Positions 5,625-57,100 of a DNA stretch of 64,000 nt are shown in pieces. Origin of the DNA: Oikopleura dioica (taxonomy: Eukaryota > Animalia > Chordata). The notes beneath the pieces are model-generated. The model made no database searches. It was not told the DNA's origin and worked only from the letters and a program-made list of their open reading frames with translations. Position numbers and translations under genes: made by a program. Location of the stretch: assembly GCA_907165135.1 (NCBI GenBank), contig OU015569.1, forward strand, positions 1,240,001 to 1,304,000. Direction: 5' to 3'. Within the stretch, counting starts at the first letter, position 1, and each line of letters starts with the position of its first letter.

Positions 5625-7504
5625 TTAACGTTTCAAACTCGTAGCAATAAGAGAAATCTCCGCATCTGATATTCTGCAACTGTCGAGATTAGTGTTTTTC
5701 GTTCGTGCAGATTTCTTCGAGCTGCTCGCGTCCCCAGCAGGAACGTACTTTTTGCAGAACACTCGCTGAACGCATCCAATTATTCTGTTCTCCTTGTTGA
5801 TTTCTTACCACTAGGTCTCTTCTGAACTTTCTCCCAAGGAAAGAATATATAATAGCATTTATCATTGGACAGGAAATAAGGAACCAGTCTTTCACATAAA
5901 TCAGCTTGTGGCAAAAATCAACGCCGAAATCGATCTTGGTTAAACGAATGAAATAGAAGAGCAGGCACGGGGCAGAACCCAGAAGAGTGGCAAGAAGGAA
6001 AATCGCTATATTCCTCGAAACTGTCTTTGAGTTGCTCCGAGATTGATTCCCGATCGACGAAAGCATCGTTTCGCTCTGTCGAATCTTTTGTCCAATTTTG
6101 CAGTAAAAGAACACTGAACTAGTAGTAACACAAGGCTGCTGGTATCTGTGCACCTGTAAGCGCAGCAGGTAGGCAAAAACCAAAAATGAATCGCGCTATG
6201 TAATGGGTGGTTTCTCCAACGGAAGTCGGTAAAAGACATTTGCTTAGCGACTCGATCAGGGTTCGGTATTTTGAATTCGCAAAATTATTCGTTTTTCATT
6301 TGAATTTCTATTTATTCGTTTACGAATATTCTCTAATGAGCGAATATGCAAAACGAATGAAAACGAATTTTCTCGGAGAATTTTTCAGAAATTCAGCGAA
6401 TTTCTCAAATATTCGCTTTGCCGCGCGCTCTGATTGGTCGGGCTTTGACGTTGCGCAGCCTATAATTTTATTTTCACCGCCCAAATAACCTTATAGCTCG
6501 CGGGCGCCACCCTTTTCTCGCCCGCGGCCCTGGAGTTCAGCCAATCCAGGGCTGTACGCTCAATTTCGAGCGAATATTCGCCCGAATAGGCGATTCGCGA
6601 ACAATCGCTCATTCTCTTAAGAAAAGAGCATATTCGCTGCGTGTATTGGCGAATTTTTCGACGAATTCAAAATACCGAACCCTGGACTCGATGTCTGGGG
6701 AGTACTCTTTGCACTTAATTATATTATTTCATATTACGGCATAATTCATCATGTACCTGTGATTCTAAATGCAACTTCGTGGCGTTAGAATCTTCAGCTA
6801 AAAATGTAGAAAAGAAGCTGCAATCTTCAAGGGTGTGAGCAGTCCAAACTTTTATACAAGAATAGGTTTCATTTCCTTCGGCATTGATGACTTTCGTGAG
6901 TGAGGAAAAATACATCAGAGGCGCAGAGCATAAAAGCGACCAGGCGAGAATGATGATGGAGAGCAAGGCTATCCTGGGAGCAGGACGGGACTGGCCAAGG
7001 CTGACGCGATGTAGAATGTGATATCGGTCGAAAGCAACAGCTGTGATGACGAGTATCGACACAGTGAGGAAGAACTCTCTTCCCGTATTTTTAAACTTGC
7101 ACCACGCTTTATCCAAAATGCCGTTCGAATCTGAAAAGCTTTCTTCTTGTATTACACGCCAAGGTGGATACAGGCAGAGCGTATGCGCGACTGCCAGCGA
7201 GATTTATATTCTATGCTCAAACAAGTTGTTATACAATGTTTAATAAACATAGTTATTTTAAAAATCTCTGATTAAAAGAAGATCGGCGATTGTCAGTAGA
7301 GTCACGAGAAAGTCCGCGGCGTTCTTTCGCGTCGTTGAAAACGTGACGATGAGGATTATTCCTTCTCTTCGGATACTAACATGTTTTTAAAGAATGCGAG
7401 ATTTGTCAGATCAAGTATCCATTCCGTTCAAGATAATGCCTAGAGCACAGCTAAACTCCCTTTGTAACCGAAAAGCTATTTCTTAAAGGAGCGTACCTGA
7501 ACAT
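5625..7504 (-). CDS. Class A (rhodopsin-like) GPCR, peptide-receptor-like; one exon interrupted by a MITE
   Basis: Spliced reading gives LGIILNG|IILIV (TM1), LTIADLL (TM2), WCK..AFDRY (TM3), FIFGFCLPAALT|VFFYCKI (TM5) and CPMINAIIYSFLGRKFR (TM7). Introns include 7362-7424 (GA-AG) and 6714-6756. The start is uncertain. Confidence 0.9.
6257..6684. mobile_element. hAT-type MITE A (428 bp) inside a GPCR exon
   Basis: Perfect 23-bp TIR CAGGGTTCGGTATTTTGAATTCG. 8-bp TSD GACTCGAT at 6249-6256 and 6685-6692. Many internal ATTCG/CGAAT subterminal motifs. Confidence 0.95.
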
Positions 7505-9257
7505 GATCGTCCAATTTTTTAGCTTGAAATCGTTGCTAGCCTTATTTTAGCTTTCAAATTTAATAAATTTACGAGTCTACTGAAGTAAATTCAAAGGAGG
7601 AGAATATGAGTGTGCGATCTAAAAACGCTTTTGCCCGCGAAATGTCAGTTCGAATCAATAGAAACCATCCGACATTAACTTCGAATTAAATTCGAAAGCC
7701 ATTAACAGAACCTCCGGACCATCCCCATTGCCGCCGGAGTCACAATCTAGAATTACATTAACAGTCTTTAGCAGATACTGTAACATACTGCAAGGTTCAT
7801 CTGGCTGCAGCAAACAGAGTTCCTCGCACAATGCTCTTTCCATAATAGCTTCTTCTTCCTTGTTTTTCTCCTCATAAAACTTTGGAATAGATTTTAACAC
7901 TCCAAGAAAGTATGAATTAGGCACTTTATGAATTGACCGAGACACTAATTCGACTTAAGTTTCAAGCAAATTTTCTTAATTAAAACGAGCTTTTTTCATT
8001 AATATTTAAATCTGTTCCGTCAAGTAATAGAAAGAGCATTCGCATAGCTTCGTTTTGTCGATGTCTTTAATATTTGTCGTCTCATTTTCCTGAGTTCTAG
8101 CTTTCCCGAGCAATAAGACTGCTCCGGACTGATAATGAACGAGGAAAGTTTTTGCGCTGGTTCTCTATTTTCTTTTCTCTCTCTCTGTCTCTCAGTCCGG
8201 TACTGAAAATACAGCGATCATTTTCTAACTGCGCGTCAATCGTAAAACCAAAAAATCGTCACCAGCAGTGCAAATAAAAGATCTAAAACGTTTTCATGTT
8301 TATCGGAGTTTAGGTGTCCCCATCGGGGAATTGCGGCTTCTTTCAGTAAAGCTAAAGTTCCTCTTTTCAGCCTTTTAAATGCAAAGCAAATTATAATTAA
8401 ATCCTCTCATTATAATTTCCCCCATCAAAGCTGATTACCGTTGAAGCAATTATAATCGAACTTCTCTCTCGCGTTTTAACAATTCTCGTCTTCTGCAATT
8501 CAAATTTGAAGTATATAATATTCTTCTACTGCCTTCTACTGCCGATTCACATGTTGGTGTAACCTACTTGAAAGCGGGACTAAGCAAGTAAGTAGGTATA
8601 TTTTACGTCGAATAATGCTTGAAGCGAAAAAGCTCTCTATTCTCTGAGCAAGTGTATGTATTTTAAATTCAAGAGATTAGTCTCTCGCTGGAGATTATAT
8701 AATGCAACTTCGGTGGTACACTTTGAGCTCATAAGAGAAGCATAACTTTCAACTCAATTCATAGATTATTTAAGACGGTGACAGATTCTGAGGTCAATTT
8801 GAAAATAAATAAAAATCGCGTCTTACCTCGCTCTAAATAATCATCAATGGGGAATATTGGATTTCTCTTTCGGGGATTGCGGCCTCTCAAGTCAAGAAAA
8901 GTCTAAGTTAGACTCTAACTTATTGAACTTTTTTTTTAAAAAGAGAAATCATTGTTCGGAAAAAGCCCCGGCGGCAATTTTAGTTTCAAGTACTAGAAAG
9001 AAACGTGGCGTTATCCTTGGACCAAATTTAATTTATTCTTGATGGGAGTTAGTAAATTTTACAGTTAACGGTTTGGAATTAGTAAAAAGGGATAGTTCTA
9101 GAGTAAGCGATTCCTTCTTCTATCGAGCAGGTTCCTGCAGGCCTGAGTTGATTCGATTCGCAGCAAACTTCCGATGGGATAGAGTACATTTGGAAACTGC
9201 CAAGGTCTGTAAGACAGCACATTGGCGTGTGATCTGAATTATAAATCTTCATTATCT

Positions 9258-10991
9258 TCATTGCTTTTTGAAGATCTTACCTATTGTCGAGCTAGAGGTG
9301 GGGGCACAAAGAGACTCGTCGTAGTCCATGAAATTAACGTCAGGAGCACCAATGGTTCCAAGAACGTTGGCGAGCGCCTTGTCGCATTCGCAAATGGCCT
9401 TCTCAAAAGGAGAAGAGGCGTCACAGACGAACGATGTTGGTTCTGGATATTCCCAAAGCGACGAGATCAGTGAGCCTGGTTGGAAGATGTCGACCGAGCA
9501 ACGAGCGCACTTTTTCCAAGCATTTATTGCCAGGTCAACATCGTCAACGATCTTACCCGCATTTTTACGGAATGGCTCGAGCTCGCCACGTCCTGTGCAG
9601 CCGTAATTCCAAAGAGCACTTGCAGTGGCGGCTGCTGCGTCTCCAGACACTCCTCCTGCACCAAAGAAAGATGCGAATCCTGACGCCCAAGCGGACAGCC
9701 ACCAATTGGCATTGACTTTGGCGGCTTGAGCAATGAGTTTGATGCAGACGCGCTCGCTGTTTCGGCCAATTGGATCATATGCGATTGCACAGAGATCGTG
9801 TTCCTTTCCAAATTGATCCGCAGTTGGCGTCCAAGTACAGTCAGATTGTCCAGTTGAGGTGTCGACAGTCGTGCAGGTCATTCCTGCAGGTCCGTTGAAC
9901 ATGATGCGATCCATGTCAACAAATGTGCCGAAGCCAGTACTGTACTCTGAATACCAGCTCATCGACCAGGAACCGTAGAAGCTGTAGACTTCTCCGTTCT
10001 TCGGACTGTCACCAGTGAATGTAGGAAGGCCTTCACAATGAGCTGGTTCGCTGGAGGGATCGCTAACCTGACGACGGCCACGAGAATGGAAATCGTCATG
10101 GTGGTCTTCTTCATTGTCTCCAAAGAGTCCAGTAAAAAGTTGGAAACCGCTCTGCTCCATCAGTCGTTTTTCTTTCTTGCTGGTCGGCATTCCAGGAGTC
10201 CACACTGTTGCCATGAATTGAGCAGGCATTGAACTCCTTAGATTTCCGTCGGCATCGAAATCTTCGACTTGAATCGCGATGGGTTTGATTCCTGACGCAA
10301 ACGTGTCTTGTAAGGGATCGTAAGTGACTTTGCACAGGTCGGCATCAAGAACTAACGAGTCAAAGCGGCCATTGTCACGTGCCAAAGCGCCACCTTCTGC
10401 CATCGTTGCCCATCGACACTTGATGCTGTCTCCATCGGGGTCTACTGGATAGAGATAGAGGCTCTGGTCGCTGCAGCCGGTCATGATGTACCATACAGCG
10501 GGTATGTTGAAGCGCGGTGAGTTGTTTGAAACATCCGCAACGGTCGAAGTGAAGATGTAGTTTCCGTTGAAACTGTTGCCGTCGTCGTCCTGCATGGAGA
10601 TTGTGCAGCAGCCGGAAGAGGTCTGAGTGAACGGCTGAGTTATTGAGAACTCTTCGTCAATCGATCCAAAGCAGTAGTGAGAGTTGACATCCAAGGACGC
10701 TGCCGTTTCAATTTCGGAAACGACATATGTGCCGCTCGTGCCGTTGTTAGCAGCGTCGATCAAGAGTGTTCCGTCTGGGTAAGAGTGAACCTGCTCAGCG
10801 ATCATTTGAGCACTCTCTACCTGGTTGTCGACGTCGTTCTGAGTGCAGCCGCTGCCGTAGCCGTCCATTGATCGTCGCCAAGCCATCGTTCGAGTGACGG
10901 ACATCTCACCGGTTCCAGCGGCGTACTGATAGGAACCTGCTCGGTAGTGGGAAGCAAAAGCGGAGGAGATAACACTCGCCAAAAATTTCAT
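9258..10991 (-). CDS. Intronless secreted protein (577 aa), oikosin-like, with a C-terminal degenerate phospholipase A2-like domain
   Basis: Signal peptide MKFLASVISSAFA, Cys-rich body with SHYRAG, NNSPRF and DPDGD motifs, basic site RGRR. C-terminus NYGCTGRG..GKIVDDVDLAINAWKKC..ICECDKALA has secreted-PLA2 spacing without the catalytic His-Asp. The oikosin label is inference. Confidence 0.85.
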   Translation of the reverse strand: MKFLASVISSAFASHYRAGSYQYAAGTGEMSVTRTMAWRRSMDGYGSGCTQNDVDNQVESAQMIAEQVHSYPDGTLLIDAANNGTSGTYVVSEIETAASLDVNSHYCFGSIDEEFSITQPFTQTSSGCCTISMQDDDGNSFNGNYIFTSTVADVSNNSPRFNIPAVWYIMTGCSDQSLYLYPVDPDGDSIKCRWATMAEGGALARDNGRFDSLVLDADLCKVTYDPLQDTFASGIKPIAIQVEDFDADGNLRSSMPAQFMATVWTPGMPTSKKEKRLMEQSGFQLFTGLFGDNEEDHHDDFHSRGRRQVSDPSSEPAHCEGLPTFTGDSPKNGEVYSFYGSWSMSWYSEYSTGFGTFVDMDRIMFNGPAGMTCTTVDTSTGQSDCTWTPTADQFGKEHDLCAIAYDPIGRNSERVCIKLIAQAAKVNANWWLSAWASGFASFFGAGGVSGDAAAATASALWNYGCTGRGELEPFRKNAGKIVDDVDLAINAWKKCARCSVDIFQPGSLISSLWEYPEPTSFVCDASSPFEKAICECDKALANVLGTIGAPDVNFMDYDESLCAPTSSSTIGKIFKKQ

Positions 10992-11378
10992 ACTTTCAGA
11001 TTTTCTGGGAGGCTCTTTTTTGATGCTCTGTCTGGCACTGAGTTGAATTATATACTGGCTGCTATCTCAAAATGTACACAAATTGAGACACCAAAACATA
11101 CGATAAGATTGGACCGGAGTCCAGCTCGGTGAATTTATCGCTTATATTTTGCCAGAAAACAAGGTTAAGAGCGGTTAGTTCTTTTACGGTTGTTTTTTTA
11201 AAGAACATACGATTCGAGATACCAAGTAATTTCAAGCAAATAAGAACCAATTGAAATGAACAAAATTTCAGTGCTAGAATAATCTAACTGAAATGCCCTG
11301 TGGCACTTTCACGGCGAAATAAATCAGAAGAAAAAATGGAAATGGTATTCACTCCGAAATCGTGCACATAAGAGAATA

Positions 11379-14300
11379 ATGCGTCTGCTGCCTGTGTGTT
11401 TCCTCACACTGGCGCAGGTTCGCTCACAAATTCCGAAATGCGAGCCGCCCGAGTTGCCAGAAGGGACTCGCATGGTCTGTCCAAGAGGTAGAAAGAATGG
11501 GGACAAGTGTACGACGTCTTGTGAACCAGGTTTCATAAAGGTATGATCTGATTGAATAGTATTTGGTGGAGAAAATCAATTTAGACTGGGCGAGACATCA
11601 CTATCACATGCAGATGCGTTCGTTTGAAAGCAGGAATCAAGTGCAAGTTCAACGAGCACCCGGCAGAGTGCATTCGAGAAGGACACGGCCAACTAGGTCG
11701 TGATGGACGAGTAATGGTGGCTCCAACTCGTCAGCCGGAAACAACTAAGGCTGGACGGCAAGTATTTTATCCTGGAGGGACGCCACCATCACCGCCAAAA
11801 CCAAAACCTGCAAAGCGCCCTAATAATGTTAATATCGGTGGCTTTGAAGCTCGTCAGCCTAGCACTATTGAAAGAAATGGAGTCTCATTCAACTCGAATA
11901 ATAAAGCCAACGTCGGTTCTTCATTACAGGTATAGACAGTAAACTTAGCACAGTAAGGTTTACCAAAGCTTCTAAGGCAACTCTCGCCCGTCAAATCGAG
12001 CTCCTTCAAGCTCAACAAGACCAGATCAACACGCTGATTAACAAACCACCGCCGGCAAAAGTTGGAATTCCGACGATTCCTTTCGGCGGTGGTTCCATTA
12101 CTGCTAATTTTGACAATGCTCAAGAGCAGCAGCAAAGTGTTGAGCGAGTCAATCTACTCGCTTGTGGAGATCCTTCGAAAATCGGCGTTTACTCGATCGT
12201 TGATAAGTGGGATACAGGATTGCTTTCAGAAAATTCGATAAAAAAAGTGATTAAGGACTGATAAAATTAAAAAAAAAATTTAAGCCGAAAAATGGTGTAC
12301 GCCCTTATCGAAAATTATCAGAATAAGAGTTCGTATTTTCTAAAGCGTAAAAAGGGTTTATGGCATCAGTAAACGTCGATCTGTCCATGATAAACGATGA
12401 TTGGAACGTAGCAGTAAGTTTTCCGGAAAAGATTTACCCTGGAAATGTGCAAGTTTGGAATGCACGATTTGTGAAACATTCTGACGATGGAAAAACTCTT
12501 CTTTTTTCGTCGAAATCGAGACATTCAAAAATGGGCCAACTCATTTAAAAAAAGTTTTAACTGTCAATCTTATTGACTTATTTGAATTTAAAGTTGACTC
12601 TTGAAAAGCTGAGGGACCGACGTTACCGAAATTCGGCTTCGTTATCTCTGATTTGCCTGTCTACTCGGCAAAGCCGCAGTCCGGAAGTGTCATCTACTAC
12701 GATAGGAAACTTCAAAGCTCCTGCGTCGATGGGGAGAACATTTGCAACGGTGCAATGCCAGTATCATCCAGTAGCCAAATGTTCGCTGCGGAAAGTTATG
12801 CTCGTACAACTGCACGTCCGACAACGACAACTCCTAAGCCCACGACAACGACGAAAAAAATGAGCCTGATGGAACTTCTTCAACAACGCAAGAAAATGAT
12901 GGAAGCGCCTCAAGAAGCAGAAGTTGAAGACGACTTCTTTGTAATTCCGACGAATAATCCAGTTTCTTATCAAAGTGAAAACATCGCTGTTGGCCCTCCG
13001 AGTTCAGGTGGAAATGATATCTGCGCCAACCAAATCATGGGAGAGTTTATCCGATTGAACAGTTGGTACACAGAAGAAACTGGAATGTCTGGAGTATCGG
13101 CCAAAATTGAGCTCACTGTTGGTCAACCACCAAGCCAAGATTTCGAAATAAACGTCCAGTTTACAGTGCCCGTGCACAACATAGAAGTCTGGACATTTCA
13201 GGCGATTCCTTCTGACAACCCTTCTCTTTGGCAATTCAAAAGAAGCCGGGATATTCCTACAACAGTAACATGGATTTCGACATCAACACGCTCTCGCCAA
13301 CGCCGAATCACGAGGACATTTCCGCAATTGTTGTCTATTGCGACGGCGCTGCTACTAACTTAGCGGCTATGTCTGTTATGGGCCAGGCAGGACTATCTGG
13401 GTCCACAGGCAGTCTTAGACCAAATGACAAGAGTCAATTATTTCAAATTCAAAACTCGGGTGGAAACTTCAATCATAGAGATCAACTATCTAAAGATCGA
13501 GATGTAAAACAGCTCATAGGAAAAATGCAAGGAGAACTTGAGAACGATATTATGAGCTATCCTTACTCACCAAGATGTACAGGCAGTATTCCAAGAGGCC
13601 TTCCTCCCATGGCACCAAGACAATCGAACATTCAGTGCGCTGAGAGTGATCCAGACTTATTCAAATACGATTTAAAGCGTGTGCTTTGCTTGTCAGGATA
13701 CTTTTACAAAGCGCAAAGAGTAGGCCCCACTGCTTCGAGAGATGTTCCTTGGAGAGGCATAGCTGGACTAAAACACGGCTGTGACATTCAGAAAGATCTC
13801 GTCGGTGGATGGTACGATGCCGGAGACAACGTTATCTTCACCTTTCCTCTTGCGTACACTATTACGATGCTCAGTTGGTCCGTCATCGAGTTCAAGGACG
13901 CGTTTGTAGCAGCTGGCGAGTATGAGAAGATACTTCGCGAGCTAAAATGGGGAACTGATTTCCTAATCAAGGCGCATATTTCTAAATTCGAGCTTGTCGG
14001 ACTCGTCGGTGACCCTCATTTGGACCATAAGAAATGGATGCGCCCAGAAGATCCAACATCGCCAAAAACACCAACTTTTATAATTGACGCTGAAAACCCT
14101 GGATCTGAATTAGCCGCAGAAGCAAGTGCAGCACTTGCAGCAGCGCATCTTGTTTTCCGTTGGGCGGAGCAAGAAGATTACGCTGATTTGTGCTTGCAAC
14201 ATGCTCTGGAGTTGTTTGAATTTGCGGATACATATCGGGGCAGCTATCATGACTCCATTCCTAAGGTATTGCTTTGTTTTACTAACTAAATGTATAAATT

Positions 14301-15114
14301 TCAAGGTTTACGACTTCTACAGAAGCTGGGAGGGCTATGAAGATGAGCTCGCATGGGCGGCGATCTGGCTATTCGGCGCTACCTCCGATAACGTCATGCT
14401 AACAGCTTCGATGGCCTTCTACAAAAAATCAGGCCAGTTGAACAGAAAACCAATCGACTGGGACAACAAATGGCCAGGTGTCCGTTTGCTTTTGGCCAGA
14501 CTGACGAAGGACGAAGAGCTTGCGCGCGAATCTCTCAGTAGACTTCGGAAGACAATTTCTTCAGCTAAATACACCCCAAAAGGGTTGATCTTCATCAATG
14601 AGTGGGGACCTCTTAGACACGCAGCAAATCATGCTTTTCTGGCCTTTGTTTCAACGAAACTCGACCTCGACAATTCAGACGATCTTCTTGACTTCGCAAA
14701 GAAGCAAATGTTCTACATCTATGGCGAGGGCGGAAGAAGCTACATAGTCGGCTTTGGAAAGAACTATCCGACAAAACCTCATCACAGGTGAATTATTTTA
14801 TCGAGTGATTTATAACGCAATTTTTCAGATCTTCTAGCTGCCCTGTTTCGCCGCAAGAGTGCGGCTGGGATGTTGCCGACGACAAAATGAGCCCGAATCC
14901 ATGGATACTTTTTGGGGCGCTTGTTGGAGGACCTGATCGCTTTGACTCCTTCATAAACGACAGGAAAAATCATCAACAAAGCGAAGTCACGCTGGGTAAG
15001 ACCGATAAAATTTCACATGCGCAACGATAAACTTTAGATTACAATGCGGCTCTTGTCGGAGGAACGGCCGGCCTTCTCTACTACATCGATCTCAACTACC
15101 TAACTGGAGTATAA
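11379..15114 (+). CDS. Secreted modular GH9 endoglucanase: signal peptide, Sushi-like domain, two CBM2-like modules, Pro/Thr linker, GH9
   Basis: GH9 motifs DLVGGWYDAGDN, KWGTDFLIK, YEDELAWAAIWL, PHHRSSSC, GALVGGPD and SEVTLDYNAA, with catalytic Asp/Asp and Glu present. Upstream KWDTG|FMASVNV..DWNVAVSF..VQVWNA..FGF has CBM2-like Trp spacing. One apparent -1 frameshift at AAAA 13238-13241. Confidence 0.92.
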
Positions 15115-15302
15115 ATTCTTTCTCGATAATAAAACATCACAACTGAACAACTCAATGCCTGCCTGCATAAAATATAGACTTGGGACGTATTTTTGATGGC
15201 TCTTGTTTGTAGTGAAAGAGGCAGTTCGTGATGTGGAATGGAAATAAGTGACCGATATATACATGTGAGAAAAATAGTGAGTTACAGAGTCGAGATGCTT
15301 TT

Positions 15303-16760: not shown

Positions 16761-17046
16761 CACTAAACAATCAAATATTACGAATTTTTCTCGGATTTAC
16801 TGTCACGAAAGTAGGAATGAATCACATTTTCATATTTGAGCCGAAATTCGTTAGTAAATCAATATTTTAAAAAATCTATTTTAATCGCCTATAAAAATAA
16901 GTTTCCAAATCGAATTATAAAACCTACTGTAGTGCTACTGTTTATCTTCGTAAAGGAATTTCTTATTTTCTCAGAGTAAATATAAAAAAGCGTCGCGCGC
17001 GAGTTCCGTTCTTTTCAATTTATGCGTTTTTCGGGGCAGCGATTCC

Positions 17047-20358: not shown

Positions 20359-20597
20359 CTGGGCTCGGCAACCTGTGTAGAAAGCCTGAGTCAGGGTCCG
20401 AAAAAGCTGAAATTAAAAGCCGCGCAGCGGCTTTTAAAACGAAGCCGCGAAGCGGCTTCCTAATACTACCATTACAATCTTTCAAAAATTTTGGCGAAGC
20501 CGCTTCGCGGCTTCGTTTTTAAAAGCCGCTGCGCGGCTTTTAATTTCAGCTCTTTCAGACCCTGACTCAGGCTTTCTACACAGGTTGCCGAGCCCAG
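20359..20597. mobile_element. Foldback hAT-like MITE B (239 bp), intergenic
   Basis: About 101-bp inverted arms starting CTGGGCTCGGCAACC (2 substitutions, 1 indel) with a spacer of about 36 bp. 8-bp TSD ATTAGAGC at 20351-20358 and 20598-20605. Confidence 0.95.
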
Positions 20598-21276
20598 ATT
20601 AGAGCGCCAGTGGAAAAAATGACGCTTTTTGGTCGACCCCGCGCGCATGGGTTAAAAAACGAAACTAAGCATAGAACCGTTTTGGGAAGTGTTAAAAGGT
20701 TTTACCATCATATTTCAATTGTTGAGCAACACTGTGCGCGAGTGATTAGGTTTTCGAACAAAGGCGCAGCTCTATTGATTATTTATCACTTTCGAATCGT
20801 CAAAAAAGATTCTGCCCAACGAAAAATCATCTTTTGCGAACTTTTCCATCAGAGAGTTTTGAGGAAAGAGAGCGCGCTCGCCCTAGAACTCGACGGAAAA
20901 TTAAACTGATTGTTTCTATCGCGCCTTGAAAAAGAGCGTTTACTTTTGATCGAGTAAACGCGCTTTGGGTGCTGTCAAAGGAAAGCATAAAAATGTGATT
21001 TGCCCTGTGACGTTTTCGCGATTTTGGAACGCTGCGATTTTGAACTGAGCGTTACTATCGAAAGATTTTCGGAAAAAATATTGTCACTTTTCAGTCGCCA
21101 AATGATGGCTCTTTTGCGGCGCTTTTACGATCGTGAATATAAATCGCCAATTTATAATAAATTACTTCCGCTTGAAAGTGGGTGTTTCGACCAGATTCGT
21201 GAGATTTCGCACTTTCGGGCTTGAATTTTCAAAAAGGTTGAAATTTTTTTCTTTTTCTATTGTGATTTTCGGATAA

Positions 21277-21386: not shown

Positions 21387-21945
21387 GGGGAGGGGAATTT
21401 TTACGTCGGATTTTGTTGAGTTGTAAATGACTAGCTAAAATGTTGAATTGTGTGATGGCCAGCGGCGCGTGTTGCCTCGCGGCGGAAAGCATTAAGGGTG
21501 TAGTAGATTTTTCGGTCGTTGGGGAAATCACACATTTGGAATTCAGTGTTTGCCATAATATGGGAATAAGTGTAAATTCAACATCATTGGGCCGATAGCA
21601 GATCAAACAAGAGATTTGGATTATTCTAAAACGGCGTCCTAACAACTTCTATTTATACAATCACGCCGTCTTTTATCAAGAGAGAACACTAGAATCGCAA
21701 AAGTTCGCCTCGAACTTTTTCAGAGAATAGACAAATAGACAGGAACGATAGTATTGATCACGTGGCGATTTCATTGATCTAAAGCAGCGTATTACTTTCT
21801 CCTCACTGTCTCAAACGATTAATTCTGCCAGCTTCTTTTTTCACTCAGATTTGTAATTGAGCTTTAATTTCGGGAAGAAGCTCTCTTTTTGAGATTTCGA
21901 ATGGAAAAACTAAGTTTTTCGATATCAATTGAAAAGTTTGGACTG

Positions 21946-22050
21946 AACCAATTTATGGAAGTGAATTTTTGGATTACCAATAAGATTGCTGTATTTGGCC
22001 TACCGGCCAATCAAAACCCTGATCCAGAAAATCACTTCCATAAATTGGTT
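21946..22050. repeat. 105-bp inverted-repeat element (29-bp arms, 2 mismatches)
   Basis: AACCAATTTATGGAAGTGAATTTTTGGAT (21946-21974) versus ATCCAGAAAATCACTTCCATAAATTGGTT (22022-22050). No TSD recognised. Confidence 0.8.
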
Positions 22051-24132
22051 TAACCCAAAAATTAAGGGATACAGAAGAAGATCATTTTAGACAATAAATT
22101 GAGAAAAATCGCTGTTGACACCCTTAAGCGAACTGTCAATTAGGATGATTGTAAGTGGTACCAGTTGCAATAGAGTATTCCCTTCCCTGTAGTTGTTGTT
22201 TTAACCTCGTGTGGGAGTCGGTAGTGAGGATACACTAAAATTGTCATTTTAGTGATTTGATGTTGCTCGTGATTGTCTTTTGTGTAGTCGAGTGGCCGAC
22301 TGGGCAAACACGTTTGCGCCCGGGCTCCTGCTTCAATCGCTCGTTTATCCATCTTTTGACAGACCAAACAGCCACTTTCCCCTTTCATCCAAGCTTCTAG
22401 ACCTCGTCCCAATCACCTAGCTACACGTGACTCTTCTCGTCCCCTTATTTTCGAGCTTCAGAAGGGTTTGAACTTGCGCGAGTTCAATTCCTTGCAAAGG
22501 TCATCCAAGGTCACTACTCGTAATCAAAATCAAAAAACATCAGCCAAGCATCATCATTTATCACCTCGCATTCATGATAAACCATGGTCGAGCGCTGGTA
22601 GCAGCTTCTTGATTTGCCAGTTGAATATTGCGGCGATAGAATTGTAAAAAAAAGGGATGAACGGTGCGAGTCGGCGCACAACGGACAGGGAGGGAGAGAC
22701 AACGCGGTGTGGTAGTTTTTTCTGATTTCAACAGCCGCGCCTGCTTTTTTTTCCGTCATCCCTCTTTTTTTATTTACCAATTTAAAATTACTACAATGAT
22801 TTTGATTACAACGATTACCCATTATTTTAATTTGGAATTGCGCTTTTATTTAATTTTACAAAACAAGAAAAGTTAATTGTTAAAAGTCCGTTTATAGAAG
22901 GATTTATAACTTTGATTCTTTACCAATTTATTGCCTCCACTTCTGAGTTATAACTTATAACTTCTGAATAAGCGGTTATAAAATTTTTATAACGAATCTG
23001 GACAGATCGCACGTTCCGTGATTTCACATGACTGTAAAAAGTAACACACCTCGTGAGAATACAAACCTCGCCAAGCTCGAGCTCGTGGCGCTCTCTCTTT
23101 TCTGCGATTTTCCTCTATCTGTTAATTTTCCTATAATCGACTAAATATATTCTTCTTGACTTTCTAAAATAGGAATTTTGCGAATAAGGAAGTTTTCCGG
23201 AAGTGCACAGCGCGATTCCCATTTATGCGCGGCTGTTTTACTGTCGGCCAGACTGATTTAAACGTAACTGATAAGAAGAACTGGGAAAATGCGTTGTTGT
23301 GAGCACGCACCATTAAAACATGGTGTTTCGAGACGTCTTGGATAAATTATTTTTCACTTCCTCTTTTTTCCGCGAAACTGTCTTTTTCTTAAACATGATC
23401 AGATGATCACATGTACAGCTTGTGATCAGTCTGCCAGACAGCTATTGTCTCGTACAGTTCTACTCTTCTTTAAATTATGCAAATGACGATGTCATTGAGT
23501 AGTACTAATCATCGATTCGAGAATCGAATCAATGAGTTCTTTATCAAGTTTATCAAAATTGAAAATGAATGAAAGGGAGCGAGTCTGGCCTTGTTAGCTT
23601 CCTTAGGAAAGGCAAGGAGCTTCATTAATCAAGGAACATTAATCAAGGACTACCATAAATGCGAGAGTCGCGGATTGTTGGTGGTGGTGCTTGTAAAAGA
23701 TTAGACAGAGTTATGAAAGGAATGAAAAAGTGTGCGCTCGCGCAAAAGTCATTTTTCAGCTCGGGAGAGAGGGAGAGAGAGCCGAGATTACCACACTGCT
23801 TGAGTGAGTGAGATGAGCTCGGGAGCGCGACGCTTGCCCGGGGTAGTAGCGACTGGCGCTGCTTTTTGAAGGGGTACTCGATGAGGTAGCAAGCCATAAG
23901 TCTAGTGACTTATAGTTTGCGCCCTGATCGCACCAAAAATAAAGATAGAATTAAATACCACTCAGAGATTACACTGGCGAAACGCAAATTTGAAATTTCG
24001 GAAGACAGAAAATTAAATTATTTTTACGATTTTGATTTTGACACGAGCTGGGAAGAGTTATTCATGAAAAACACTTTTGAAAGATAAAAGAAAGAGAGCT
24101 AATTAACGAGAGAATTGTGTTCAGAAGCAGAA

Positions 24133-27432: not shown

Positions 27433-28532
27433 AATAGCCACTCTGTACTTTTTTTGTAAATTTGATCGTTCAACTCTATCCGCAGCCTCGACTTTTTCTA
27501 AAAAGTAATTTCGTGTTCTTACTTTCCGCAAAACAAAAGACAACTTTTCATTCAATCTTTATTTTTCTCCTTCTTTCCAATCTTTACAGATTAATTCTAG
27601 CGTTCTCTTTCGTACAGGGAGATAAACATACTTAAAGTATTTATTCAGTTTTCGACAACTCCCAAAAAGTCCTCTTCATTCCCAATATTTCTATTTTTCG
27701 CGCTGTTCGAATATTTCGCATAAATCTAGTTCCGAATGCTAAAACTCACACCAAACCAAGCAAACCAAACGATGGGAAGTAAATTCCCAAAAGTTCAATC
27801 AACAAGAAAAGCAACGAAATTAACCTTGAGAAGATTCTTTCTCCTGACTCTATCTTTTCTGAGATTCTTTTCTGGCCTGAAAATCTTCCTATAAAGCAAA
27901 GAATTAATGATGACCCATTCTTTTTATCTATATATTTTTTTCGCGCCTATCACAATACGCCGTCTGTCCATAACGTTTTCTCTTTTCGGAAAACGAGTGT
28001 TTCCACAAATCGCCGCCTCAACAACTTTTAATTTCCCAAAAAAGAATTACCACTACTCCCTTAACTATTCCATTCTATGCTCCTCCAGGAGAGGCCCCAA
28101 TCCACGTCCACAGTCGCCGGGTCGGTTTCGTGAATGTCATTTGAAAACCGTTTTTGCCCGCAGTGGCGAAATGTGGCCCTGGAAGCCCTCTTCATACCTT
28201 TTTTTTTCTAGCGGAACGTTACAGCTCTCACTCTCCAGGATGCATTTTACACACAATCGCTTCTTCCCTTAAAAACATTAGCAAATGTCTTCAAGCTGAT
28301 ATTCCTCTTGTTCAACCTCGACGAGATTAGACCCAACGACAAGTACAAGCTTTGTAACTTATATACAATCTCCTCTTTTAAAACTTATCTTTGTTTGGGA
28401 GCTTCAAGCTTCGTAATCCCATACTGAAATTTGAAGCCCAGCATAGGCATCCCAAACACAGACAGCACCTTATTCCAAACTCCTAAATCAACCGAAACAA
28501 GTTATGAAGCTATCAAGTTATTTTGCAAAGTA

Positions 28533-28689
28533 CAGTCAGGTCTTGCAATTGCGCGACCTGCAATTGCGCGGTTTTTTGGGAAAATCCGATACACAATTTG
28601 CACTATTTAGTGCATTTTAGGGCTTGCAATTACGTGGTTTTTAGCCAAAATCCCGAAAATAAAAACCGCGTAATTGCAAGACCTGACTG
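28533..28689. mobile_element. Tc1/mariner-type MITE (157 bp)
   Basis: 18-bp TIR CAGTCAGGTCTTGCAATT flanked by TA on both sides (28531-28532, 28690-28691). Internal TGCAATT repeats. Confidence 0.9.
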
Positions 28690-29076
28690 TATAATTATAT
28701 TATTCAAGAAATTCACAACCTAGAGTCACAAGCAATTTTCTATTCTATTCTATGATGTTATTTTCTGAGCAGTTTCAACTTTTTAAGGCCGCTAACAAAG
28801 AGCTTCTGTACGTCTTTCCTGTAGAAACATTGTAAAACGTCAAAAACAAATATTCAAAAAAAAAGAAAAACTTGCTGTTGTTTGCCTCTTCTTTGCAATG
28901 AAAAAATAGACATCAGAGCATAAGCTTTACGTATTCAGACTAGAATAGCGTTAGACTAGATCGATTTGTTACTCTCGGTACCTACTGTAGTTAATACTTA
29001 CCGGGACAAATCGAGGTGCAACCCATCTCGCGGTTCTTTTTCGTCATCGCTCTCTTTTTGTCAGTAGACTTTCTTC

Positions 29077-44031: not shown

Positions 44032-44162
44032 ATTTTCGTTCTGAAATCAAATAGCGTCAGAGACTCTTTATCGCTTCGAGTCCAATGGATTAGTTAGATA
44101 AAGCTCAGCAGCTGAAGCGCTTTGGTTCCAAGGATAATTTAATTCCCACTTTTGGCGCCGAG

Positions 44163-48334: not shown

Positions 48335-49319
<985 letters not shown>

Positions 49320-50105: not shown

Positions 50106-52992
50106 TCAGTCTCCAGTATAGAGACTTCCCCCTTTGGCCATGGATTTAGCGAAGTCTTTGGATATAACAAGTTTCGGCGTGCCGCTGACAGGATCGACCC
50201 CTTTGTAGACCTGAATCCCTTTGCTGTTTGCGTAAGCGACGATGAACTGGACCGCGCACTTAGTGGTGAAATGATGGGAGAACAGATGATCGAACCAATC
50301 TTTGTCTTTGGCGAAATTATCCACGAAATTTTTGTAGTATTCCTGAAAATGTCCTGATTACGGAATGTAGCGGCGGAATGAACTTACATAGCTGCCACCA
50401 AAGGGAATGTCGCGAGTTGGAGAGTCCTTGTCTTCTTGCACTAACGCTTCGATACACTTTTCTAAATCGAGACCTTTCGGTTTGAGTCTCGTGACTTTGC
50501 TGGCATCATCTTCTTTAGCCTTGACTGGACCATCCTCTTCTTCCTCCTCTTCTTTCTCATCCTTTTCCTCCTTCTGTCGCTTAGCCCAGGCTTCGTTGGT
50601 CTTTTCGATCTTCTCCATGAGTTCTTTCATCATTCGTCGCTCTTTCTTGTTGGCATAATCTCAAATTTGATTCAGTAAAGGACATTTCAACTGCTCACCT
50701 ACTTTTGTATGGCAAATCGTCCTCGTTTTGATGGCAAATTTCATCCTCAAAAGCACCGTATAGACTAAAAACGTTTTTTTTCTTCAGAAATAAACCAAAT
50801 AACTTACGAAACGACATCCGAAGAATGGTTGAATGGGTCCCGGCTATAGAGCTCCATCAAGTTGAATCGTGTCTTGTTCAATTTTGGATAGAACTGAGCA
50901 AGAAATTCCAAAGCCCTTTCTTCGTCCTTCCTGTAGTGTTCCAGCAGTTCCTCGAAAATGCGCAAGACTTGCTCTCCAACGCCTATTGCCTTCTTGTATA
51001 AACCGGGCTTCGCTTTTCTGTAAGCGAGGCAGGCGTCACAGTTCAGGTATATCAGATACTTCTTTAGCTAAATTCTACGTTTCCGCATTGGTATTCAAAA
51101 ACAAAAACTAACCTGCAATTCATCTTCCAAATTTTTGCACACGGCACGCTCTAAGCAGTGAATCGCTTGGGCGAGTAAGTCGCCGGATCGCTCGGCACCA
51201 AAGTAATCGTTTTGATTCCTGCTAGGTTCGATCTTCTCCTCGCCAGTGTTGCTGTTGACGTCGCGGACACCCTCACTCGCTTTTGAGAACTGTTCCTTGG
51301 CTTTTGTCTTGAGTCTCTTGCATGTTGCCATGATGGCTTTGAGTGGGATCTTTGCTCTGTATTTCATCGGCATCCGGATGAAGCGTTCGTGAAGTTCGTA
51401 GGTGATGTAGCACAGTTTGACTTGGAAGACGATCGTTGCGTTGCCGGGAATTCGCGGAAGCATGCCCCACTTTCCATATGCCCACTCAGGTTTGCAAATG
51501 ACGAAGTGCTGCGATCCTGAAGTCATGAGTTCGATCGCCGCTTCTAGGCCAGGAAGAGTTGCGCCACAGCAGATCTCCAGGTGCTCCATCATTCCTTAAT
51601 CAGAGTACAGTCCAGAGACCCTCAAAAAGTATTTCTACCTGTCTCAACATCTCCACGGTCGTAAGTATAATCAATCGGTGGAGCCAAAAGGTCATCGCCA
51701 AGCCACATGGCATAGTGAATACCGACTAGTACAAGAGCTTATGAAGCAATTACATATAAAACTACTTACCAACTGGCAAATAATTGATGTCACCGCCATA
51801 CTCTTTCATCAGCCCCTCAGCACGCTCCTTTTCTTGAGCCAGTGCGTCAGCTAAAAGTAAAGGTAGCAGATGTTGTGCTCAGTTACTAGCATCTCTACTT
51901 ACCAACAGTGATTCCCCGTTGTTGTCGTCTTTGGTAAGGCTCATGTTCATTTACCGGGATTTTCGTTATGCGGACTCCTCCATTAGTATCTAAAGAAGAT
52001 ATAATTGAACAGGGATGAATTTTTCATTTGAAATCATAGAAGAAAACGTATAATTTCATCTTTTTGCTGGTTTTCTCTTTGGTGTAAATTTCAGTCTGTA
52101 ATCACCTGGCACCTCTTCTGTAATATTGTAAAGGTAAGCGAGTCTCTCCTTAGAACAGGGATGGAAATCTGAGCGGCACGGCACGGCACGGCACAGCGGC
52201 ATGGCACGGCACGGCACGTGCCGTACCGTGCCGTGCCGGAGAGTAAAATCTGGTTGCGGCACCGCGGCACAGTAAAATTAACCATTCCTTGATTTGTTAA
52301 TTTAAGGGGCTTGACGGCCCTTCGGGCCGTTTCAGCCCCGTTCCTTGATTTGTTAATTTAAGAGGCTTGACGGCCCTTCGGGCCGTTTCAGCCCCGTTCC
52401 TTGATTTGTTAATTTAAGAAGCTTGACGGCCCTTCGGGCCGTTTCAGCCCCGTTCCTTGATTTGTTAATTTAAGGGGCTTGACGGCCCTTCGGGCCGTTT
52501 CAGCCCCGTTCCTTGATTTATTAATTTAAGGGGCTTGACGGCCCCAACCCCACTCTCATCCATTGTTAGAAAAATTCAAATTATCCAAGATTTTGATTTT
52601 ATTATGGTTTTCATTTTAACTTTTGAAAATTCTATAAGTACACTAGCAGCTTTAATTTTTTTCATTTATATAAATAAGTTATATGATTCGAATTTGTGCC
52701 GTGCCGTGCCGTTGTGCCGCGGCACCCCATTATCGAATTTTGTGCCGTGCCGTGCCGTACCGTGCCGCGGCACGGGTATTTTGGTTGTGCCGTGCCGTGC
52801 CGGTGCCGCTTGAAAATTTTCTCCTATTTCCATCCCTGCCTTAGAATTGGCACCGGGAAAATTTCTAGGGAAGAGCAGTCTGGAAAAACGATCGCTCTTG
52901 GCTGCAGCATGTTGGAAGTTGAGCTCTAATTCCAGCCCGTCCATTTCAGCAGCAAGCTGCGAGTCAACGCCTATTTCGTAGTCGTACAGCAT
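50106..52992 (-). CDS. FKBP6: FKBP6/shutdown-like FKBP-TPR co-chaperone; exon 1 interrupted by a MITE
   Basis: SKERLAYLYNIT (cf. LYERLSQRMLDI), VGIHYAMW, GLEAAIELM..KPEWAYGKWG..IPGNATIVFQVKL, IPLKAIMATC, TPR YLIYLN..GEQVL, NYANKKERRMMKEL. Exon 1 joins exon 2 via a GA-AG intron (inferred). Confidence 0.8.
52156..52838. mobile_element. hAT-type MITE C (683 bp) inside FKBP6-like exon 1
   Basis: 13-bp TIR CAGGGATGGAAAT. 8-bp TSD CCTTAGAA at 52148-52155 and 52839-52846. Subterminal (GGCAC)n on the left and (GTGCC)n on the right. Confidence 0.95.
52285..52544. repeat. 56-bp tandem repeat, about 4.6 copies, inside MITE C
   Basis: Units start at 52285, 52341, 52397, 52453 and 52509. Each full unit contains the hairpin ACGGCCC-TTC-GGGCCGT. 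Confidence 0.97.
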
Positions 52993-54135
52993 GCTCACGA
53001 GAAAATAAGAAAATCCTGCTTCTCTATATCGCAGAAAAACCTATTGTGTCAGAGGTCGCGTTATGGGGGCCAATCGGAAGGAATAGGAATTGACCAGTTA
53101 CGGTGACTCACATTTGCACATAGGATTGTCAGTTCGCGATCAAGGCTGATTTGCCGCGAAAAGGAATCATCCCTTATCGGCACAGCAACGCGCCAATTAG
53201 TTCGATTTTCATCGTTTTTTCACTCTTTGTCGCCATTTTTCAGGAAAAATTGTATGATTGTTTAATAAAATGCTAAAGTTTTTCACTCTCGTTATTTTTC
53301 TCGAGAAAAAAAAACACGAAAAAGAACAAAACAAGGACGAGAATAGCCCATGCGCAGGCCGATGTTTTCGAAAATGAGCGCCCGTCTCTAGAACTTGCGC
53401 TGAGCAGCTCATGTTTTTCACTTTTTCTCATTCACCGCCAAACCAGCTCTGGGGTAATCAGAGTCCGAACGGACTGCTTTTCAGGTAAATCTAGCGTTTT
53501 TGAAGATTTCCAAGTGCTTACAAAATTGTTTTTAGTGCTCTCCAAAGTCCATGGGCTCTCCCTATTGTTTCTGTAAACTGGAAGGCCTTCTTCAAGCCTT
53601 AAGCAATATAATATTGCCAATATTCGGTCAAAAAAAACCGATAAAATCTTTATCATAAGCAAAAATGCTAATGATAGAGTCTATCACCGCAGTTCTTCAC
53701 TGAAAACCAATAAATAAATGCACTATTTCCCTAAATGGGGCGATACGGCAAAAATTATATTTTAAATATCCTGTGTCATTCTTTTGTTCTGAGCGGTTGA
53801 GTGTAGGGATGTCTACTGTTAGAAAGGCTACTGAAGGGTTAGAAAATCTGAAGGGCTGAGAAAATCCCGTATTTCTCAAATCGACATATTATGTCCCCTT
53901 ATTAAGGGGTCTTATCAAAATATAATGCCAATACAATCTGCTTATATTTTACATGCATAAACAAAAAAAGAATAATGTAAAGTTAGATCAAAGTTGATCT
54001 TTATTGGAACTTTTTGAACAGCAAAAATAAGTCGGTAATAGGGTAAGTTGGTAAAAAAAAGGTCAGAAGGGCAGATAAAATAGGGAGGGGGAGGGAAAAA
54101 ACGAGTTTGAGTCTGAAGAGGGGAGAAATTGTTAT

Positions 54136-57100
54136 TTACAGTCGACAGAAGTAGATGGGGGCGTTGGGCATTTCCTGCTCCTTCATGTCGATGAGGCCTT
54201 CAGCCCCGAGTGCCATGAGGGCGGAGAACGCTTTCGCCGCCTGCGTTCTTTTCATTCCGCGGCAGAAATCGTTGAAGTTTGCGTAAACGCCGACTTCAGG
54301 GAGCCAGTTGAGCAACTAAGCAACGAGTTAGGAATTGAGAACATGAACAAAGAATAAAGTACTTACGGCTTCTTTGAAATCTTGTTGGCTGCCTTGCGAA
54401 GAAGAGCGAGGCTGCGGGTTGAACTCAGGAACTTGCATCTGCGGAGGCTGAACCTGAGGGACTTCAACCTGGGGGACCTCAACTTGTGGCGGTTGAGGAG
54501 CGGGGAGTTGAACTGACGGAATGCTGGTAAATGGCGTACTCGCCATTTTTGGACCAGAGACATCGTTCGGGAGGGAGATGTCATTTCCACTCGTGGGCCT
54601 GTTCACGAACGTGTTGCTCTTGCTAGAGGAGCTCGCCGTGCTTCGGTTTTCAGCCGTCACATTTCGCCGTCCTAAGAAGATATTTTTTCCGACAATGATG
54701 GTTTTCAATTACCTTCTCCCGTGCTTCGGTTTTCCATGCTACTTGAGATGCTTCGAGCGTCGTTCGTAGCGTTTTGGTTTCCTAGAAAAGATTCGTCATT
54801 TTCTTCAACAAGACGATGCTTTCATTACCTCTTGCACGTCGTCCTGCAGTCTTGGCATCACGGCGGAACGCCTCGCAGACCTCTTCGTGCAGTTTGTCCG
54901 CAGTGCAGGGGTTCAAGAAGATCTCCCTTCGGTTGTCGTTCAAAGCCTTCAGAACTCCTCTGTCTTTGGAGCCGACCTTGAGCTCGATTGTGCCAAAGAA
55001 CTCAAAAGGGTCGTTGATGAGTTCGCTGACATCGCCGAAACCGAGCGCTTCGTAGCCTTCTTTGCTCGGATCTCTGAGCGAGATCACCTCGTCGATAATC
55101 AAGGCCCTCTTCTTCTTTCCGCGCTTTTCCTAGAGTTTAATAACCACTTGGTCTGATATGATTTCTAAGTACTTACGTTGGTCACAGTTTCATTGTTGTT
55201 TTCATCGTCGGGCGAAGGAGTTTCCGAAGCAGTGGCAATGTTCTCCTGTGGAAGAGAAAGTGAAATCGCCGGTTCGGTGGCACTCTCGTTGATTGCAGTC
55301 GTCTCTGGTCCATGTCCGGCGATTGCGCTCAAATCGAACGGGTTCTTCTCTTCTGGTGCAGGCGGTTCCTGCTGGGGAGCGTCATTTGGAGGCTGGACCG
55401 CGGTGTATTCGAACTCTGGTCCAGGTGCTGGAATGGACGGTCCAGAAGATGGCTGCTCGGAGTCTGCGCGCTGGGGCTGAGACTGGGTCGAGGATGGAAA
55501 GTTACTGTTGAGTTCCTCGTCAGTGACACCCACAATATTTTCCCCGAAGAGCGCCACCATCTCGTCGTGATCGTATGGCAGTTCAACTGGTGCATCATCG
55601 TCCAGATTCAAGAATTCGGATTCGTCGCGCATCGTAATCTGCTCCCATCGCGCTCTGAAAATGCAAATTAGGACGAGAAAAAACATGAGTTCGAACCTGT
55701 TTCGATCTTCATCGGGAAACTCAATTTCACCCATATCTTCATCGTTGATGTCGTTGATTGAGAAGTCGAAAAGAGTCTTGTCGGCTTTCTTGGTCTTGGG
55801 GACCGGCTTCTCCCATTTATGGGTGTTGCTCAGGGGTCTGGATTTTGGCCAAAAATGAAAAGCGAAAGCGAAGCGAAAGCGAAAATTTTTCAAAAATTTA
55901 AAGCGAAAGCGAAGCGAATCAAATTATCGAAAGCGAAAGCGAAGCGAAGCGAAAAATTTTTCTAAAAAGCGAAAAAAGCGAAAATTTTCCGATAATATTT
56001 GACCTTCGAAAAAGTGTCCATTTTAGGTTCGCTTTCAATTTTATTTCTTTTCGGGCATTCGGACTCCCTCTCCGGAAAGAGCGAAATCGTGGATTTTCTG
56101 ATCTAACTCAGCTGAAGAGGATGTGTGGCTCGAGTGATCTCCATTTGCCCAAATGCCGTTTCCCCAAATCACCGTTTATCCAACTTGGGGGAACCTAAAT
56201 CTTGGGCAAACGGCAATGTGAATAAATGCCGATACAATGCCGATCCCGGGTTATTGGACGTTCATCCCGAGACTGACGGTATGAGAGGCCAGAAATGACG
56301 TCTGAAAAGCCAGGATCGAAGTTGTTGAGTCCGGGATTGATCTTGGTGAAGCCGGGATTGACTGTGGAGTAACCAATAAGTTATTGGCAATAGTTAAAGT
56401 TATATGAATCATATTATATGATCAATCAATTTAAAAAAATTCACGTCGCCGTTTGCCAATGTCGCCGTTTCCCCAAGTTCGGCAATCGGATATCTCTGGC
56501 GACTTGGGAAAAGTTATCCCGGAAAACGGTGACCACTCATCAGCTCAGCGTAGCTCACAATATATTATTGTCAATATTGGCTACTTTGAAAACATTCAAA
56601 TGATCTCAGCAAAACTCTGAATAGTGCAAATTAAGTTCAATAAGCAAAATTCTCAGTTATGCTTTCGCTAAAGCAGATGAAAATAACAAAATATTCAATT
56701 CTTAGAACGATTTCTTAAGAGCGAAATTTTGCGAAAATATTTGGTAAAAAGCGAAAGCGAAGCGAAGCGAATTGAAATTACAAAAAGCGAAAGCGAAGCG
56801 AAGCGACTTCGCTTCGCTCTGCTTCGCTTCGCTCATGAGCGAATTCGCAAAGCGAATCCAGACCCCTGTGTTGCTAATACTAGCGAGAAAAGCAGCGCAG
56901 TCCTTTTCGAGATAGGCAGCCTAAATTGACTATCAGAGAAGTCCCAGAAAATGTAAAATATTACCTTTTTGTTGAGGACTTGGGAGAGTCCCTTGAGCAG
57001 TGTTCCGCTCTGCCGGATGCTACTGGTGGTTGAGTTGGCTCTCATTTCTTCGACGACTTCGTCGATTGAGACTTAATAATATTTCCACAGCTCGAAGAGG

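Follow-up and report, generated by a model that had tools for sequence, protein, structure and literature searches.

Three coding exons of the larvacean Oikopleura dioica are each interrupted by a small DNA transposon that may have become an intron. The exons lie in a 64,000-nucleotide (nt) stretch of the Okinawan OKI2018_I69 assembly (GCA_907165135.1, X-specific scaffold OU015569.1:1240001-1304000), hereafter the window, in whose coordinates all positions are given. The three insertions, E1, E2 and E3, are miniature inverted-repeat transposable elements (MITEs) of the hAT type, and they sit in minus-strand coding exons of a rhodopsin-type G-protein-coupled receptor (GPCR) gene, an FKBP-domain gene and a Rad21/Rec8 kleisin gene, respectively. 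We favor the reading that E1–E3 are young insertions of three different hAT-type transposons in exons, spliced as new introns, and put its probability at roughly 0.65. The public gene models run through all three elements, as they would if the spliceosome took each one out as an intron.

Each of E1–E3, recovered by an inverted-repeat search and direct reading of its site, begins with CAGGG and ends with CCCTG; complementarity between the two ends covers 13-16 of the first 14-16 nt. In E1, the terminal inverted repeat (TIR) is complementary at 16 of 16 terminal nt. Each element is bounded by a target-site duplication (TSD; Table 1), which reads ATCGAGTC (E1), TTCTAAGG (E2) or AGCAACA(C) (E3) on the coding, minus strand. 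A sequence-only reading of the window had placed three of its four hAT-like MITEs in exons of a GPCR, FKBP6 and a kleisin gene; the positions, TIRs and TSDs it gave were all recovered, and of the name FKBP6, an FKBP_C domain is what the Pfam matches support. A blind scan of the window for perfect 8-bp duplications around TIRs matching at at least 12 of 14 positions returned four matches, namely E1, E2, the fourth element E4 and one low-complexity match within E3, against none in 30 shuffles. Shuffles served as the control because inverted repeats survive sequence reversal, which makes reversal unsuitable. The surroundings of E4 lack a long open reading frame (ORF). In so gene-dense a genome, random insertion would be expected to put about as many of the four elements in exons; the notable point is the lack of depletion.

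The hAT superfamily is marked by 8-bp TSDs and termini of the form (T/C)A(A/G)NG. By their sequence, E1–E4 have the features of non-autonomous hAT-superfamily elements and appear to represent three or four different families. They resemble known hAT MITEs in their 8-bp TSDs, in the short CAGGG-starting TIRs of E1–E3, which conform to that terminal pattern, and in short subterminal repeats in each element. They differ in that no autonomous partner was identified for E1–E4, in that the nTnnnnAn target consensus is only half matched at each site, and in that E4 begins with CTGGG, outside the superfamily pattern. Past the terminal pentamer the four elements are unlike one another, the sole exception being a 30-nt match between E1 and E3 (E = 2e-4). 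ORFs confined to an element reach ~61 amino acids (aa) at most, in elements of 240-1038 bp; longer ORFs of 93 aa (E1) and 92 aa (E2) cross an element boundary. Judged by ORF length, with the Pfam scan aimed at the host-gene exons rather than at element ORFs, no transposase ORF was noted in E1–E4.

No further copies of E1–E4 occur within the window. Copy number was read from a DNA run with the same species label (X28), which contains 37% of the window's sampled words; other DNA runs contain 63-88% of them. In this run the E2 interior and the E3 ends reach 10 to 10,000 times the depth of their flanks, and 12 contigs with unrelated flanks adjoin the E3 terminus, indicating that the E2 and E3 families are multi-copy. 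The summed contig depth over the E2 tandem repeat is ~980,000, against ~86 in single-copy flanks, so this 56-bp unit is extremely abundant in the genome. Matches to the E1 terminus in JGI metagenomes (32 in number) were single and unpaired, showed no further similarity and were set aside as chance.

The exonic position of E1–E3 is supported in three ways. Removing each element together with one TSD copy leaves a continuous reading frame, Pfam matches are colinear on both sides of the insertion, and orthologous or allelic sequences run through the site uninterrupted. The claim that such removal restores a conserved frame therefore stands. The total inserts, element plus one TSD, measure 436 nt (E1), 691 nt (E2) and 1045 nt (E3), each 1 mod 3, and translation through a retained element would stop after ~25, 57 and 54 codons, respectively. 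Retention would cost the GPCR its transmembrane helices (TM) 5-7, the FKBP-domain protein its whole FKBP domain, and the kleisin everything past its N-terminal domain.

The three host genes place the insertions precisely. Without E1 and one TSD, the GPCR exon reads CKEYSPDIESLSKCLLPTSVGETTHYIARFIFGFCLPAALT, spanning extracellular loop 2 (ECL2) to TM5; it is flanked by ordinary GT-AG introns of 43 and 40 nt, and the neighboring exons match Pfam 7tm_1, the preceding one over profile positions 47-146 and the following one over 171-260. E2 lies 51 codons into exon 1 of the FKBP-domain gene. In the kleisin gene, the last exon matches Pfam Rad21_Rec8 at 24.6 bits, over the Pfam cut-off, and the second exon gives a weak match to Rad21_Rec8_N (positions 35-70 of 110), which puts E3 where the Rad21/Rec8 N-terminal domain ends. 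Both the FKBP and the kleisin gene keep an open frame in all their remaining exons. The kleisin gene also holds a 42-nt GT-AG intron (55655-55696, minus strand) that is in frame and stop-free here, and that a naive ORF reading would count as coding; its homologue in a related metagenome contig (L002) is out of frame, indicating a genuine intron.

Empty counterparts were recovered for all three insertions. The E1 site is empty in a Logan contig (L005) that is 86-87% identical to the window, where the alignments of the two flanks overlap by 8 nt. In L006-L009, four contigs from a lineage further removed (70-75% identical), the flank alignments stand ~97 nt apart, again the mark of an unoccupied site, and a GPCR protein from Bergen (P0005) has DIRDLNK in place of DIESLSK, the sequence that an empty Okinawan exon would give. 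For E2, a 3323-nt contig of X28 links position 52147 to 52839, skipping 691 nt with 8 letters shared; by its sequence, this contig is an empty E2 allele in a conspecific. Its depth over 51400-53425 is ~86, compared with 150-250 summed over most other single-copy parts, and that individual may be heterozygous at the E2 locus. The E3 site is empty in two metagenome contigs, one 90-96% identical (L001, ...ASISNTQKWEKPVPK...) and one 77-80% identical (L002, ...AKVTNTHKWEKPVPK...), each with one TSD copy. At the empty sites of E1–E3, exactly one TSD copy is present and the frame is unbroken. The uninterrupted exons in related lineages and individuals indicate that the insertions are derived, and the perfect TSDs and near-perfect TIR ends indicate that they are young.

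Table 1. Elements, duplications, host genes and introns in the window. The caret marks a splice junction.
Feature	Position	Strand	Description
E1, hAT-type non-autonomous MITE	6257..6684		428 bp; CAGGGTTCGGTATTTT... termini
E1 TSD	6249..6256 and 6685-6692		GACTCGAT; perfect 8 bp
E2, hAT-type MITE	52156..52838		683 bp; CAGGGATGGAAAT termini; CGGCA subterminal repeats
E2 TSD	52148..52155 and 52839-52846		CCTTAGAA; perfect 8 bp
E2 internal tandem repeat	52285-52544		56-bp unit, 4.6 copies
E3, hAT-type MITE	55831..56868		1038 bp; CAGGGGTCTGGATT termini; GCGAAAGCGAAGCG subterminal repeats
E3 TSD	55823..55830 and 56868/9-56875		GTGTTGCT, i.e. (G)TGTTGCT; second copy overlaps terminal C/G by 1 nt
E4, fourth MITE with 8-bp TSD	20359..20598		TSD ATTAGAGC; CTGGG termini; arms 81 nt, 98% complementary
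GPCR exon with E1	6154..6713	-	ECL2 to TM5; 124 nt when empty
Annotated GPCR model g13590 (Oidioi.mRNA.OKI2018_I69.XSR.g13590.t1)	5625..6915	-	244 aa, N-terminally truncated
Annotated FKBP-domain gene	50106..52992	-	587 aa; E2 in exon 1; Pfam FKBP_C
Annotated kleisin gene	54136..57233	-	556 aa; E3 in exon 3
E1 intron as annotated	6251..6680	-	430 nt, GT-AG; donor CAGG^GT in terminus, acceptor AG in 3' TSD copy; +2 codons (SR)
E2 candidate intron	52149..52839	-	691 nt, GC-AG, scarless; predicted from annotated length
E3 candidate intron A	55829..56864	-	1036 nt, GG-AG, +3 codons; weakly favored by length arithmetic against 556 aa
E3 candidate intron B	55810..56863	-	1054 nt, GT-AG, -3 codons

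In the mechanism we propose, the ordinary permissive U2 spliceosome would remove each element from the pre-mRNA. Regardless of element orientation, the coding strand would always present a TSD, then CAGGG...CCCTG, then the second TSD. With three to four Gs in a row, every phase would find a dinucleotide that begins with G, and one of these, at or in CAGGG(G), would be the 5' splice site: E1 would use GT, E2 most simply GC, and E3 either GG or GT. An AG within the 3' TSD copy or directly past it would serve as the 3' splice site, with the C-rich CCCTG before it as a short pyrimidine stretch. Pairing of the TIRs would bring the two splice sites to within ~10 nt of each other. The resulting mRNAs would stay in frame, with two codons gained at E1, no scar at E2, and three codons gained or lost at E3. 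With CAGGG(G) ends and a spliceosome that accepts any G donor, a donor would be at hand in all phases, and nearly any exonic insertion near an AG could instantly be an in-frame intron.

The presence of AG in every coding-strand TSD had been offered as support for splicing. AG is indeed present in all three, but it occurs in 42% of the 8-mers on these strands, so three of three would be met by chance with a probability of ~0.07, and the argument is weak. Similarly, the CAGGG terminus had been said to supply an in-phase G donor. This is borne out at E1, where CAGG^GT...AG^TC adds two codons as in the public model, but an in-frame pair is nearly guaranteed at any site. Within a few nt of the boundaries lie 6 (E1), 12 (E2) and 8 (E3) in-frame pairs of G donor and AG acceptor, so that being removable in frame hardly discriminates once any G donor is allowed.

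The annotated genes span all three elements. A homology search with the last GPCR exon led to the annotated protein Oidioi.mRNA.OKI2018_I69.XSR.g13590.t1, whose locus in GCA_907165135.1 matches the window base for base over 12,915 nt. OKI2018_I69 genes were predicted with AUGUSTUS, with RNA-seq reads serving as intron hints (PMC8008620). At E1, the annotated GPCR protein (P0004) reads CKEYSPDIESRSLSK / CKEYSPDIESRSLSKCLL, contains DIESRSLSK, and matches the junction CAGG^GTTCGG...CCCTGATCGAG^TCGC (6680-6251) exactly. The arithmetic of the gene model closes: introns of 43, 430, 40 and 43 nt sum to 556 nt, which together with 244 codons and a stop account for the 1291 nt of the gene.

At E2, scarless removal of 691 nt together with eight GT-AG introns (116, 52, 44, 44, 45, 43, 43 and 45 nt) yields exactly the annotated 587 aa. 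Among the possible 691-nt removals, only GC(52839)-AG(52149) restores the original sequence; the GG-AG and GA-AG variants alter one or two residues. When the gene is parsed with GT donors only, the best models enter E2 and give 609-613 aa, and a lower-scoring GT-only model of 587 aa exists. The simplest reading is that the annotated gene has a non-GT intron at E2. For such an intron to be called, AUGUSTUS as a rule requires an RNA hint. Ordinary introns of the host genes have GTAAGT-like donors and T-rich YAG acceptors, and the E2 acceptor, CCATCCCTGTTCTAAG^G, looks normal. We also considered the 116-nt intron of this gene (51990-52105) as a decayed E2-like element and rejected it, as the shared CATCCCTG is no better than in shuffles.

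At E3, the annotated kleisin gene (57233-54136) runs through the element. Conservation in L001, L002 and a third sequence (L010) supports a scarless kleisin model of 579 aa, and the annotated 556 aa would require one extra intron, of 78 nt with a GG-AG removal of E3 or of 60 nt with a GT-AG removal. A decent 78-nt candidate lies at 55505-55428, and the 60-nt candidates are all weak. This length arithmetic is suggestive only as a guide to the E3 junction.

Several observations weigh against splicing of E1–E3. The gene finder may have chosen the E1 intron ab initio, with probably little RNA support for the GPCR model, for reasons given below. The FKBP reading is a length match, and 691-nt GG-AG and GA-AG models, as well as one lower-scoring GT-AG model, also give 587 aa. 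A dynamic-programming rebuild of the kleisin gene against 556 aa is ambiguous, with both GG-AG and GT-AG fitting. The acceptors of E1 and E3 are mediocre. In a predicted fold of the E1 intron RNA, the TIRs pair over ~24 bp, from the first intron nt to 10 nt before the acceptor (z = -6.9), and this stem would bury the 5' splice site. The proposed introns, at 430-1036 nt, are far longer than the genome median of 49 nt. Finally, for E2 at least, a conspecific shows polymorphism or absence, and a ~95% identical contig lacks E3; recent null alleles would give the same picture.

RNA data add to this side of the balance. Among indexed RNA runs, none contains the window. Three 2026 oligo-dT RNA runs with the same species label (X4-X6), searched over 51400-57300, gave zero exon coverage at at least 90% identity, which indicates that they belong to another cryptic lineage. 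In these other-lineage runs no read spanning an E2 or E3 junction was found over the same interval. The claim that E1–E3 act as introns has indirect support, from the annotated genes that span them, the exact E1 junction in P0004 and the E2 length that fits GC-AG. Reads of X4-X6 do match the GCGAAAGCGAAGCG and CGGCA subterminal repeats (55858-55990, 56740-56830 and 52174-52240) before continuing into unrelated sequence, suggesting that elements with these short repeats are transcribed in that other lineage.

The alternative that survives best, and that we nevertheless consider unlikely, is that E1–E3 are recent loss-of-function alleles. The elements would then be unspliced or inefficiently spliced, three genes would be knocked out on this X haplotype, the haplotype would persist because the genes are dispensable or redundant or through drift in a small culture, and the annotated introns would be gene-finder artefacts. 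The youth of the insertions, the empty E2 site in another conspecific DNA run, and the lack of E1 and E3 from every other sequence recovered all agree with this view, as do the want of a spliced read in X4-X6 and the ab initio look of the GPCR model. A gene finder could rescue any frame, given that an in-frame GN-AG pair is nearly always at hand, and the animals were drawn from generation 44-47 of a culture (PMC8008620).

The source animal itself argues the other way. The assembly derives from one mature male (PMC8008620), and because the scaffold is X-specific, the three interrupted alleles are hemizygous and were his only copies of these genes. Were they null alleles, a mature male would have lacked all three gene products together, a cohesin kleisin and an FKBP-family protein among them. 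Hemizygosity argues against masked heterozygous nulls, although not against dispensable genes. The FKBP and kleisin genes are otherwise intact, and a gene finder limited to GT donors would most naturally have produced 609-613 aa over E2 where the annotation has 587.

Aberrant or leaky splicing is an improbable intermediate, in which mixed junctions or partial retention would yield mostly non-functional transcripts and the alleles would be hypomorphs. Several competing in-frame and out-of-frame G-donor and AG sites lie within a few nt of each junction, and the long introns, the weak E1 and E3 acceptors and the stable TIR stem over the donor would all favor it, but a hemizygous male that reached maturity suggests that enough gene function is left. 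An assembly artefact is hardly credible: beyond the general 1.3% error estimate for this Nanopore-based assembly (PMC8008620) nothing speaks for it, misassembly cannot create perfect 8-bp TSDs with matching TIRs, and X28 contigs end exactly at the E3 boundary, with many other copies sharing the E3 terminus.

The GPCR gene may carry a non-canonical intron upstream of E1, and with it an indication of how its model was made. Between TM2 and TM3 there are three in-frame stops, and only a 78-nt GA-AG intron (7191-7268, minus strand) would keep the frame, with boundaries ATCA^GAGATT...GCTGGCAG^TC (7268-7191). This may be the GA donor that the sequence-only reading had reported elsewhere in the window. 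The public g13590 model begins at an internal Met (6915) in TM4, and TM1-TM3 are missing; the gene is probably mis-annotated. The internal start and the need for a GA-AG intron upstream suggest that the gene finder probably worked without hints at this gene, in which case the E1 intron may have been called ab initio.

Beyond the main subjects, the window holds an inverted repeat at 28531-28691 with 45-nt arms, 78% complementary, that start with TACAGTCAGGTCTTGCAATTGCGCG and may belong to a small MITE of a different type. A second inverted repeat, at 21937-22059, has 38-nt arms that are 87% complementary around a 47-nt spacer. A neighboring annotated gene at ~11379-15114 (L003 1-1537) encodes a 1047-aa protein with a Glyco_hydro_9 domain, a cellulase.

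The permissive donor rule that E1–E3 would exploit is a known property of this species. O. dioica splices ~11-12% non-GT-AG introns, mostly G*-AG (PMC8008620, PMC4122922), and non-GT/AG introns make up 11% of those annotated in OKI2018_I69 (PMC8008620). G*-AG introns are three-fold enriched among newly gained O. dioica introns, and the source of many new introns is described as unsettled, with reverse splicing proposed (Denoeud et al. 2010, via PMC4122922). The candidate introns studied here share the species and the donor rule (GA, GC or GG with AG). They differ in proposed origin, as the published proposal is reverse splicing and DNA-transposon insertion is not documented, and in length, with 430-1036 nt here against a typical ~49 nt.

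The closest larvacean precedent is Fritillaria. TIRs of non-autonomous DNA transposons are reported to act as non-canonical splice sites in Fritillaria borealis (Henriet et al. 2019, via bioRxiv 10.1101/2025.08.15.670264, PMC11282704), and non-canonical sites, mostly AG/AC and AG/AT, account for >90% of introns in Fritillaria, alongside duplicated U2AF subunits (bioRxiv 10.1101/2025.08.15.670264, PMC11282704). Both cases involve a larvacean, TIR-bearing non-autonomous DNA transposons in coding sequence, lineage-specific positions, splice sites at element ends and removal by the U2 spliceosome, the last two as proposals here. They differ in that Fritillaria introns are non-canonical at both ends, whereas ordinary G*-AG sites are proposed here; in that the acceptor comes from the TIR there and the candidate acceptor from the TSD here; and in that splicing here is a proposal drawn from gene models. 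Fritillaria-type AG/AC or AG/AT ends were not found at E1–E3, which instead terminate in CA...TG; at E1 the annotation has a GT-AG junction, and no such frame-preserving pair is needed.

Introners of Micromonas, Aureococcus and other eukaryotes (Huff et al. 2016; Gozashti et al. 2022, PMC9860276; review PMC11282704) offer the second comparison. They too are short TIR- and TSD-bearing DNA transposons whose TSD supplies or completes one splice site and whose copies show presence/absence polymorphism. Like introners, E1–E3 are derived insertions at orthologous sites that lack an intron. Splice sites contributed by TIR and TSD appear in the E1 gene model, with the donor in the CAGGGT terminus and the acceptor in the TSD, and are predicted for E2 and E3. 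Introners, however, form intron-specialized families whose near-identical intronic copies number in the hundreds to thousands and bring their own splice signals, whereas E1–E3 come from three unrelated hAT-type MITE families of an ordinary kind. Gozashti et al. 2022 (PMC9860276) make no mention of Oikopleura or tunicates, and a limited search found no literature linking Oikopleura with hAT MITE-derived introns. It is plausible, by this comparison, that the route is mechanistically the introner route, with a larvacean precedent in Fritillaria, and that it would differ from Fritillaria in its ordinary G*-AG sites and from classical introners in drawing on several unrelated generic MITE families where those have one specialized family.

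Most ancestral introns of O. dioica have given way to new ones, whose origin has been a question since 2004-2010. If E1–E3 are unspliced, what is left is the ordinary case of a laboratory strain with three linked knock-outs. If they are spliced, datable and polymorphic exonic transposon insertions in intact genes would provide a testable, DNA-level mechanism of intron gain. Such a mechanism would tie the tolerance of O. dioica for G*-AG donors to intron gain and set the species on one continuum with Fritillaria, in which MITE-derived introns predominate. With filled and empty alleles, a culturable species and X-linked sites, one could measure directly how efficiently a newborn intron is spliced and what it costs in fitness. 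We regard it as possible, at somewhat less than even odds, that ordinary hAT MITEs are a principal driver of massive intron gain in O. dioica. On that reading, living populations of a culturable chordate would be polymorphic for the presence or absence of nascent introns, and the birth of introns could be watched and manipulated in them.

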